A stretch of DNA of 64,000 bases, taken from NCBI GenBank assembly GCA_904063045.1, contig CAJFCJ010000007.1, forward strand, positions 4,223,404-4,287,403. The letters run 5' to 3'. The stretch comes from Dimorphilus gyrociliatus (Eukaryota; Animalia; Annelida). Below the pieces are notes generated by a model that was not told the DNA's origin, searched no databases, and saw only the letters and a list, made by a program, of their open reading frames with translations. Both the position numbers and the translations under genes were made by a program. Of the stretch, positions 12,601-34,497 are shown piece after piece; position 1 is the stretch's first letter; each line of letters begins with the position of its first letter.

Positions 12601-13656
12601 ACTCTATTTCTTTATGAACTGATCGCATATGTGTACTCATTTCGGTCAATGAAGAAACACTTTCACTGCAATGTCTACATTGTCCAAGAAAGGCCCTTTT
12701 GGGAACTTGACGCATTTTGTCTGAATGTAATTGTATCTTGATTGGTACTGTCGTTAAAAAATTGAAATTCTTACTTTTTCGATAATCTTCGTCTTGGAAG
12801 TCGCTTGAAAAAAGTTTCACGTGTTCTTTTACGATATCCTTATTCATTTTCAAATTGGAAATCATATAGGACAGCTCTGTAGGTATTTCAGGTGACTGAG
12901 CTGCTTCGATATTTTCGTTGATGTAATCTATCGTTGCCATTTCTCCACTTTTTAGCATATGTCTCAATTTTTTCTCAGTGACATACTCGGGAACTTCTTC
13001 TATCTCGCGACGTTTAATGCCACGAGTACTTGGCGAATCTTCTGAAATCTTTGGTGTTACAATCTTTATCCACACTTCTTCATTTCCGTCTACTTCAAAA
13101 ACAAAAATATTTTTACTTGGACATTACATTTAATCAAATCACCTGTAGTCATTTGAGCTTCTGCTTCCTCGGCTGCCTTAAGAACATTACTAGAGGCTTC
13201 ATCAAGACCGTAGCCTTCTTCACATATCTCACCAACTTCAACAACCTCTTTCGAGCTATGACTTCCTATAAAGTCAAATATAAGAACAACACAGTATCAA
13301 TAATATAAATACTACCTGGTTCTTGTTTTGTAGCTGCTGTTTGTTGAAACTTTAAAAGTTGGCTGGCTGACTTCACCGACTTTGCTTTTCCTAAATTTAA
13401 AATCGTATGTTTTTTTGAATCAAATGCTATATTTTGCAAGAAAACGCGTAAGCACGTAAAAAACTGGGTAGTGACTGAAAACGGGCCTCCCCATTAATAT
13501 TAAAAAAATAACAAATTCGATGATTTTTTGTCGTAATGATTAGGAAATGTTAGATTTAGTCTTTTCCATATGAAAATTTATCAATAAAGTGCCTTAATTA
13601 GTTAAAATTTTACAGTTAAACTAAAATCGGAATATTTTACCTGGTGTCGACGCCAT
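9685..13656 (-). CDS. multi-exon C2H2 zinc-finger protein (~15 fingers in two clusters separated by an acidic linker)
   Basis: Start ATGGCGTCGACACCAG|gt at 13656-13641; phase-consistent GT-AG exons join the track ORFs; 4 N-terminal fingers (e.g. CPECGKGFNFKQKLQQHMKYH) and ~11 C-terminal fingers; stop at 9685. Confidence 0.8.
10765..10786. repeat. (AT)11 microsatellite in a ZNF intron
   Basis: Directly visible ATATAT run. Confidence 0.9.
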
Positions 13657-31373: not shown

Positions 31374-34300
31374 TCAAAGTTTACTGAGAATTGAATCGCT
31401 TAGTGTTTCACTTTTCTGCAACTTAGGAAAAGTTTGGTCAAAAGCGTATAGGATTACCTCTCGGACATTTTTAACGAAAACAAACTCGATATCATCCTGC
31501 AAAAATAAGCATAGATCAAAATTAAAGCAAGATTATTAGAGACTTTCAGCTCACCTTTACACTTTGTGGTACTTTTACCAAATTCTTTTCATTCTTTTCT
31601 GGTAAGATGACTCGGCGAATTCCAGCTTGGTGGGCAGCAATGACTTTTTCTTTGATTCCGCCGACGGGAAGAACGTAACCTCGAAGAGTTAATTCTCCGG
31701 TCATGGCTGTTCTGGAACGAACTACTTTATCTGTAAAGAGCGATACGAGCACTGTTACTATTGTAACTCCTGCAGATGGTCCATCTTTCGGAACAGCTCC
31801 TGCCGGAAAGTGAATATGAACGTCACTCTTTTCAACTGTTTCTGTGACAATATCCAAGAGTGGAGCATGTGACTTTAGCCAGTTTAGGGCTAGAGTAGCA
31901 CTTTCCTTCATTACATCTCCTAGTTGCCCAGTTAAAGTTAGCTTTCCTGTACCAGTGATACGAGATGCCTCAACATACATTATTTTTCCACCAACTGATG
32001 TCCAAGCCAATCCAATTGCAACCCCAGGTTGGGTAACGCTTTCCCACTTCTCGTATTCAAAATTCTCCGGCTACAAATCATAGCTGTTACCGAAAGATAT
32101 TGTAAAAAGCTTGAAATATTTACCCCCAATATTTGATTGATTTCTGTCACATCAAGTGTGAAATTAGATGCCTCAGGATTTTTACTTTCTGCAACTTTAA
32201 CCGCAATAGAGCGACAAACAGCTGCAATTTGCCTGTCCAGGTTCCTAACGCCGGCTTCAAGGGTGTACTTGTTGACTAAAAATTTGCATTAGAGTTGATT
32301 ACATGAGTTAATATATGAGCATTTCGGAAACTTACTTATTTCCATTAAGGCTTCATCTGTAAATGTAAGATTTTTATCGGTTAATCCATGTTCCTGTAAC
32401 TGTTTCTTTATGAGATGTCTCTTGGAGATATGCAGTTTATCATCTCTTGTATACCCTGGTACTGTGATTACTTCCATTCTATCAAGAAGCGGCCCTGGAA
32501 TAGTACTCTGTTGATTTGCTGTTGCTACAAAGAGCACTTGAGAAAGGTCAAAAGGGGTATTAACATAACTTTACGAGTTAAGGAATCCTTTATAGGTTAT
32601 TGTTAGAAAAAAAAATAAAGAGAATAACATAGGCTAAGGATACTGATCAGTAAAAGAAAAATTTTGAGCCGGATCTAAAACTTCAAGAAGCGCTGCAGCC
32701 GGATCACCATGAATGCCTCGACCCAATTTGTCAATTTCATCCAAAAGTATCACTGGATTTTTGGTCCCTGCTTGTTTAATCCCTTGAATAATTCGGCCAG
32801 GCATAGAACCGATATAAGTTCTTCGATGACCACGAATATCAGATTGATCGCTACAACCTCCCAGAGCAATTCTTTATTTTAACAAAACGAAGTTTTAGAG
32901 TGAAATTTTTAAATACTTTTAACACTAAAATTTAATCGACAGAGGTATACCTATGAAATTTCCTTCCAAGAGTTTTTGCTATGCTTTGACCAACACTAGT
33001 CTTGCCAACACCGGGTGGTCCAATAAAGCACAAAATTGGACCCCTTAATGAATTTTTTAAACGTCTGACAGCCAAATATTCAACAACACGCTTCTTTAAG
33101 TCGTCTAAGCCATAGTGATCTTCATCTAAATCCATCCTATTGGGAATAATGAAAAAGAATGTATTGATTTGATTGCAATAAAGGAAAATATATTTTTATT
33201 TGAATAACTTTGCTTTTTCAATATTTAAAGAATCTGTAGTTGACTTATTCCAGGGTAGATCAGCCATTAATTCCAGGTAATTTCTTTTAAAAAAGAGATG
33301 AGATTTCAGTACTAAATAATGTTTCGTTTTTGCTTTACCTTAACATTGCGTGTTCTGGCATTGCTGGAGGCATCTTCTTCAATCTCTTTAATTCCCTATC
33401 AGCAATTTTCTTTGCTGCTTCAGGTAATCCTGCATTTCTGAAGATTTTTTTAGGACAATTAAATTCGTATAAGAAAACTTGTACTTAAAATTGTATAGAT
33501 ATATGTATATATTAATATATATATTTACGATAATTTCTCATCTAAGTCTTCCGTATCATCTTCATCATTTGATCGACCTGGTAATCTAGTATCAATACGT
33601 CGCCCTCCTCGAATAGCAATTATAGAATCTTTGTCTTTTGGTGGTCGTTTTATTGATTCTAATGCTTCGATTTGTTTTTGGACAAGAGGAAGTAAACGAC
33701 TGATTCTTTTGTTTAAATCAATGGCGTCTAATATGCTTAATTTTTCATTGTGAGATGCTTGAACTAAGCTTAAACTAGCTGTTATATCTGGTAACTGGTT
33801 GTTTGGAACTTCCGATAAAATTTTCTGTTGAAATATCCGTCAAATAGTATATAATAACAAACAAAAATAAAAAATACCTTCATTTTTTGTAGAACGTTTG
33901 GGGATAAATTGAGCATATCAACTAATGTGTTAGCCTTGTTTCTTAATTCTTCTATAAGATTTGTAACGTTTTCTTCGAGAACTTCGTGATCTTCGGGCAA
34001 ATGATCTAGTTGAGTAACTGCTGCGACAACATAGGGTGTTTCTTGAATAATGGAGTCGATCTTGAATCTACATAATCCTTGAACTAATAGAGTATAGGAA
34101 GTTCGTGGCCAGTTTGTACCAGTCACCTGAACAACAACTGCGGCAACTCCGATAGGATGTAAAAGAAGGTCATCTGATGTTTGGGTCTGTATTTTGAATA
34201 TATAATTAAAGATGTTTAGTCTCAAGTTTCAGAACTTTACGGTATTATCAGTGTACTCTGAAGGTACTACTCCAACAATTGTGCTTGCCAATGTATTCCT

Positions 34301-34497
34301 ACCAAGAATTTTGCTCTGCACCAAGTTTAAACTGAATTGTTGTAAAAACAAAATTAGGGATTTTAAACAATCCTTGTTGGTAGGACCTACTTTTTTGTTG
34401 ATTGAACAGGAAGACGCATATTTGTTCCTGGAAGAAGTACTTTATTAACCGATAAAATCGGCAATCTTCTAGGAATTGCTATCTCCGTACTCGACAT
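31374..34497 (-). CDS. LONP2: peroxisomal Lon protease
   Basis: [13 protein letters not shown]; Walker [10 protein letters not shown]; PKDGPSAG and GGIKEK Ser-Lys dyad; C-terminal PTS1 SKL*. Confidence 0.96.
32569..32643 (-). other. U12-type (minor spliceosome) GT-AG intron in LONP2, 75 nt
   Basis: Donor GTATCCTT at 32643-32636, branch site TTCCTTAAC at 32585-32577, AG at 32570-32569; splicing restores FTDH|[13 protein letters not shown]. Confidence 0.9.

Follow-up and report, generated by a model that had tools for sequence, protein, structure and literature searches.

The compact genome of Dimorphilus gyrociliatus contains, within its gene for peroxisomal Lon (LONP2), a short intron with the appearance of a minor-spliceosome substrate. 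The locus raises the question of whether this intron is genuinely of the U12 type, whether the components that would remove it have persisted in the same genome, and whether its retention carries any regulatory meaning. Throughout, "the window" denotes the whole 64-kb stretch of DNA that was analysed. Regarding the first part, it can be stated with high confidence that, on the minus strand, LONP2 carries at window 32643-32569 a genuine U12-type GT-AG intron, the excision of which would fall to the minor spliceosome.

The LONP2 gene and the signals of its eighth intron

The gene model was built from stop-free segments and junction sequences, and all protein searches were conducted exon by exon. 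It extends over 31374..34497 on the minus strand and comprises 12 exons and 804 codons, from an ATG at 34497 to a stop codon at 31376-31374. Each exon was checked singly in its own phase, and all 12 are open with consistent phases from the ATG through SKL and the stop. Single-exon searches recovered the Pfam domains LON_substr_bdg (PF02190), AAA (PF00004), and Lon_C (PF05362, 245 bits) in this order, while the C-terminus reads ...SDSILSKL, ending in the PTS1 tripeptide SKL immediately before the stop. Because the domains stand in the expected order and the protein terminates in SKL, the gene is, as judged from its sequence, an intact peroxisomal Lon. Ten of its introns are U2-type, 53-91 nt in length, with GTAAGT-like donors. 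In intron 6 (window 33137-33208, minus strand), the donor GTTATT (aaa/GTTATTCAA, the slash here and below marking the splice junction) is weak, and the junction was placed only from the reading frame and from likeness to other Lon proteins.

The remaining intron, number 8 of 11, is the U12-type GT-AG intron of 75 nt at 32569..32643 (minus strand), lying in phase 2 within a His codon and assigned from its sequence, the reading frame, and a strict genome pattern. In genome coordinates it corresponds to a strict pattern match at G000:C7:4255972-4256046(-). The intron starts with GTATCCTTAGCC... at 32643, and its 5' splice site, GTATCCTT (tca/GTATCCTTA) at 32636..32643 on the minus strand, is the predicted pairing site for U11 and U6atac, the motifs of which are intact in this genome. 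The branch-point box TTCCTTAAC, at 32577..32585 on the same strand, is complementary to U12 GUAAGGAA with one A bulged, according to the sequence and the U12 alignment. Towards the 3' end, the minus-strand order is TTCCTTAAC, then TCGTAAAG, then the AG of the 3' splice site at 32570-32569. The second A of the box is located 9 nt from the last base of the intron. At position +9 the intron has A, the base in most U12 candidates of this genome being T.

The original prediction had described an intron with this donor and branch box at exactly these positions, and both its coordinates and its description were correct. In one detail it requires adjustment, since the box was said to stand 8 nt before the AG: the distance of 8 nt applies to the exon, the distance to the AG being 6 nt. 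It had also pointed to the absence of a polypyrimidine tract, and the spacer between box and AG, TCGTAA, indeed contains none, yet the U2-type neighbours are alike in this respect. The pyrimidine fraction over the last 20 nt is 0.50 in this intron, compared with 0.45-0.70 in the ten U2-type LONP2 introns. As these neighbours have equally weak tracts, the missing tract, although real, has no diagnostic value in a genome as rich in AT as this one.

Exon 8 (32644..32871, minus strand) encodes the AAA+ module PF00004, reading IALGG...NFSFTD, and supplies the CA of the His codon, so that it ends ...TTT ACT GAT CA. Exon 9 (32336..32568, minus strand), open when translated separately, supplies the T and begins T TAT GTT AAT. 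The predicted spliced junction joins ...ACTGATCA to TTATGTT.... When the flanking exons are translated separately, the split codon CA/T gives His, and the conserved F-x-D-H-Y (F-T-D-H-Y here) is restored, as had been anticipated in the form of TDH-Y. These observations bear on whether the gene model itself is wrong, the stretch being coding or part of a pseudogene with no intron present. No support was found for such a reading. Translation straight through in frame gives Q-Y-P followed by a stop, the uniformly open exons and the order of the domains speak against it, and excision restores an invariant D-H-Y that matches intronless homologous fragments. An error of this kind is effectively refuted.

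The frequency with which such signals occur was obtained from counts over the 77.9 Mb genome, in which the strict pattern GTATCCTT-N20-120-TCCTTAAC-N5-15-AG was compared with the reversed pattern as a control. The strict pattern gave 17 matches against 2 in the control, an enrichment of approximately 8-fold. From the 2 control matches in 77.9 Mb, a chance rate of ~0.002 per 64-kb window is obtained, and for this reason a chance origin of the U12 signals in the LONP2 intron is very unlikely. A loose pattern, RTATCCTT-N20-300-TCCTTRAC-N6-20-AG, was uninformative, with 64 matches genome-wide and 62 in the control, and thus no excess. Within the window, RTATCCTT was found 13 times where 6.8 were expected, a count reached in 0 of 100 shuffles, and TCCTTAAC was found 3 times where 2.6 were expected. 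The other RTATCCTT sites of the window stand without intron context. No second site in the 64-kb window combines donor, box, right geometry, and coding context, and the other ten LONP2 introns are U2-type. Two other ATATCCTT sites with weak branch boxes, at 12834-13613 (+) and 2682-2587 (-), were considered and rejected, having no coding context.

Minor-spliceosome components and other U12-consensus introns

The survival of U11, U12, U4atac, and U6atac, which the original prediction had deduced from the intron, was confirmed by profile search of the whole assembly (77,897,245 bases in 349 contigs), with Rfam gathering scores as the threshold. One full-length match was obtained for each minor snRNA, all above gathering: U12 at 91.7 bits, U11 at 113 bits, U4atac at 63.9 bits, and U6atac at 87.6 bits. 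The alignments display an unchanged branch-site pairing region AUGAGUAAGGAAAAU in U12, an intact 5' end AAAAAGGGC in U11, and an intact AAAGGAGAGA in U6atac. Sm-like sites are likewise retained, and U6atac ends in a run of U. Moreover, the four genes, which are unlinked, have in common an upstream element, A[AC]ATGCAAAT[GT]A, at -72 to -81, identified from the sequence at L001:1420-1500(+), L002:1646-1730(-), L003:1420-1500(+), and L004:1618-1700(-). U6atac has in addition a TATA-like TATTTAAAA near -33 and a terminal T run. The ATGCAAAT element is probably the snRNA proximal promoter element of the species, and the box of U6atac probably a pol III TATA. The presence of a common promoter-like element, with a TATA box on U6atac, argues that the four are working genes.

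Regarding the proteins, at least two that are specific to the minor spliceosome appear to be encoded: PDCD7/59K, with matches of 51+24 bits, and CCDC84/CENATAC, with matches on three exons. SNRNP48, also named in the original prediction as a protein to look for, gave a different outcome. The sole matches to zf-U11-48K (PF05253) in the profile search, at L007:1189-1802(+) and L008:1450-1771(-), were rejected as SNRNP48, as both carry two tandem CHHC fingers and are thus GTSF1-like; no SNRNP48-like gene with a single finger was detected with this profile, which represents a short domain and was searched exon by exon. The ubiquitin-like domain of SNRNP25 (PF18036) and zf-SCNM1 (PF15803), likewise short domains searched exon by exon, gave no match, and the controls for them were also blank.

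From what is established about minor splicing in general, recognition of the LONP2 intron as a unit by the U11/U12 di-snRNP would be expected. U11 would base-pair with the UCCUU in the donor, and GUAAGGAA of U12 with UUCCUUAAC, leaving a branch adenosine bulged 9-10 nt before the 3' splice site. Subsequently, U4atac/U6atac.U5 would join, and the AAGGA of U6atac would take over the donor from U11.

The LONP2 intron is accompanied by others of similar character elsewhere in the genome. Twenty pattern matches were fetched and their flanks inspected, and at least eight of them interrupt real genes at junctions with domain continuity. Seven of these are GT-AG introns: in a Snf7/CHMP1-like gene (83 nt, G000:C1:623960-624042, +), La (98 nt, G000:C2:3954550-3954647, +), Indigoidine_A (93 nt, G000:C5:1129364-1129456, +), a TFIIB/BRF1-like gene (81 nt, G000:C17:615624-615704, +), UDPGP (99 nt, G000:C17:781513-781611, -), vasohibin (131 nt, G000:C28:141602-141732, -), and Smg8/9 (100 nt, G000:C6:216718-216817, +). 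The eighth, in zf-HIT, is AT-AC (80 nt, G000:C19:3333488-3333567, +). Both VASH1 and BRF1 are listed as minor-intron genes in the human and mouse tables of the Minor Intron Database (PMC6717393). Minor introns of approximately 75-130 nt are the norm in this genome, with the LONP2 copy as the shortest validated.

Orthologous introns at the same His codon

In a word search with LONP2 exon 8, none of the fragments found came from this genome, the best identity being 81%, and hence there was no match spanning its junction. Among those returned, seven of plant-type Lon end ...FND-QYP, which is the in-frame read-through of CA/GTATCC. The donor that these fragments have at this site is thus of the U12 type, as was borne out in their contigs. 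Four animal-type fragments, of approximately 80% identity, continue uninterrupted across TDHYLNVPFDLSQ and are interrupted 31 nt downstream by a donor of GTAAGA type. Since they read straight across TDHYLNVPFDLSQ, some animals have no intron in this His codon of LONP2. L112:2096-2476 and proteins P0002-P0005 have no His-codon intron, and a U2-type, GTAAGA-like intron is located at SQ/V, 31 nt downstream. This SQ/V intron of some animal LONP2 genes is lacking in the present genome.

Metagenome contigs were then scanned for DPxQNxxFxD followed by CAGTATCC (CA/GTATCC). The branch box formed no part of the query. The labels "plant-type" and "animal-type" were assigned solely from the flanking peptide (...SKVIFVATANR and ...SQVLFIATANT, respectively). 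The scan gave 99 contigs (L013-L111), none of them regarded as human. Both intron ends were contained in 57, from which 45 complete introns of different sequence were obtained, all interrupting this His codon in phase 2; as GTATCC was required, these counts are silent on the number of orthologues converted to U2-type. Plant-type LON2 accounts for 28 of the 45, with lengths of 92-702 nt, and animal-type LONP2 for 17, with lengths of 87-1809 nt. Of the 45, 41 have a TCCTTRAY-like box at a distance of 8-19 nt from the 3' end. Such 8-mers are 29 times more common in the 8-19 nt zone than in the rest of the same introns (0.057 versus 0.002 per position). The box-to-exon distance of 8 nt in D. gyrociliatus falls at the short end of this range, and its intron of 75 nt is the shortest among those seen at this codon. 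Because orthologous U12-type introns occupy the same codon in both plant-type and animal-type sequences, the U12-type intron of peroxisomal Lon is ancient, and has been retained here and shortened to 75 nt. The comparison agrees with the retention that had been proposed from the single copy.

Several variations were observed among the animal-type contigs. In L014, L016, L035, L040, L043, L081, L085, and L090, an extra intron that is lacking in the present genome is located just before "SLHGDP". Several of these contigs display weakened U12 signals, with GTATCCA or GTATCCG donors and TTCCGTGAC or TTCCATAAC boxes, and no clear branch box was seen in L016 and L080. The weakened signals may represent stages of decay or conversion.

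Alternative readings and relation to known systems

The evidence above can be used to weigh how the intron is most probably removed and whether its type has consequences. It might be an ordinary U2-type intron, removed by the major spliceosome, that resembles the U12 consensus by chance. Its GT-AG ends and its length, which falls within the range of its U2-type neighbours, would fit such an origin, as would the absence of any excess in the loose pattern. The strict pattern, with its marked enrichment over the control and its minimal chance rate per window, points in the opposite direction, and GTATCC constitutes a poor U1 site. Furthermore, the branch box is kept at a fixed distance in orthologous introns from 45 distinct plant-type and animal-type sequences, and the genome has all of the minor snRNAs, which together render major-spliceosome removal highly improbable.

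A separate possibility accepts the U12 type and adds a regulated bottleneck, in which slow minor splicing or retention of the intron limits the output of peroxisomal Lon; the original prediction had suggested a rate-limiting switch of this kind. The concept exists for mammalian minor introns (PMC3728624), and the keeping of U12 type at one codon in plant-type and animal-type sequences is compatible with selection on type. No sign of regulation is present in the sequence, however, and much of minor-intron evolution is explained by neutral processes according to Larue & Roy (PMC10639083). LONP2/Lonp2 also does not appear in the complete minor-intron tables for human and mouse (PMC6717393), and as these tables list gene names, its absence is meaningful. 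Some animals have lost the intron and the mammalian lists do not include it, which argues that it can be dispensed with. A regulatory bottleneck is regarded as unlikely. Likewise unlikely is a broader proposal, namely that the U12 type has been held at one Lon codon since before the plant/animal split because the intron ties peroxisomal proteostasis to the activity of the minor spliceosome. If that were true, the 75-nt copy of this compact annelid would serve as a tractable minimal model both of such a switch and of the lower length limit for U12 splicing in animals. The reading preferred here remains that of a U12-type intron handled by the minor spliceosome.

The surprise implied by the original prediction is not sustained. 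The retention of minor introns in D. gyrociliatus has been published: Larue & Roy 2023 (PMC10639083) reported that the species had lost ~80% of the minor introns, for the most part through deletion, and had kept approximately a fifth. Far shorter minor introns are also known, with a median of 39 bp in Blastocystis (PMC10639083), so that a working minor intron of 75 nt would be unsurprising. LONP2 is not named in the text of PMC10639083, the supplement of which contains no per-gene or per-species list, and U12 is not mentioned in the D. gyrociliatus genome paper (PMC7854359). No literature was found that links Lon (LONP2, LON2, Lon protease, At5g47040) to U12 or minor introns. The LONP2 minor intron is of an ordinary type documented before, in a species for which a survey of such introns exists, and in our assessment these findings hold nothing surprising for a splicing specialist. 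They imply that introns became shorter in this compact genome while the minor spliceosome was kept, which fits both the compaction described as "conservative" (PMC7854359) and the survey (PMC10639083). A small addition is the occurrence of minor introns of ~75-100 nt in real genes of this animal. Moreover, the Lon minor intron occupies one and the same codon in plant-type and animal-type sequences, yet neither the human nor the mouse list includes it and some animals lack it, so that it is usable as a marker of loss or conversion.

In comparison with known systems, the LONP2 intron resembles those of animal minor-intron genes such as VASH1 and BRF1 (PMC6717393) in its /GTATCCT donor, in the TCCTTRAY box near the 3' end, and in its non-zero phase. 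As in genes of that type, a single minor intron stands among many major ones, and dependence on U11, U12, U4atac, and U6atac would be expected here. The vasohibin and BRF1-like genes of this genome also have U12-consensus introns. Unlike typical vertebrate minor introns, that of LONP2 is much shorter, and its gene is unlisted in human and mouse. With the plant-type LON2 and animal-type LONP2 introns it has in common the position and phase (F-x-D-CA/.../Y), the GTATCC donor, and the TCCTTRAY box, whereas those introns are all longer and several of the animal-type copies have weakened signals. The compact animal genomes of C. elegans and Oikopleura are not known to encode a minor spliceosome. 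D. gyrociliatus is similar to them in its small genome and short introns, but differs in having kept the four minor snRNAs together with at least two proteins specific to the minor spliceosome.
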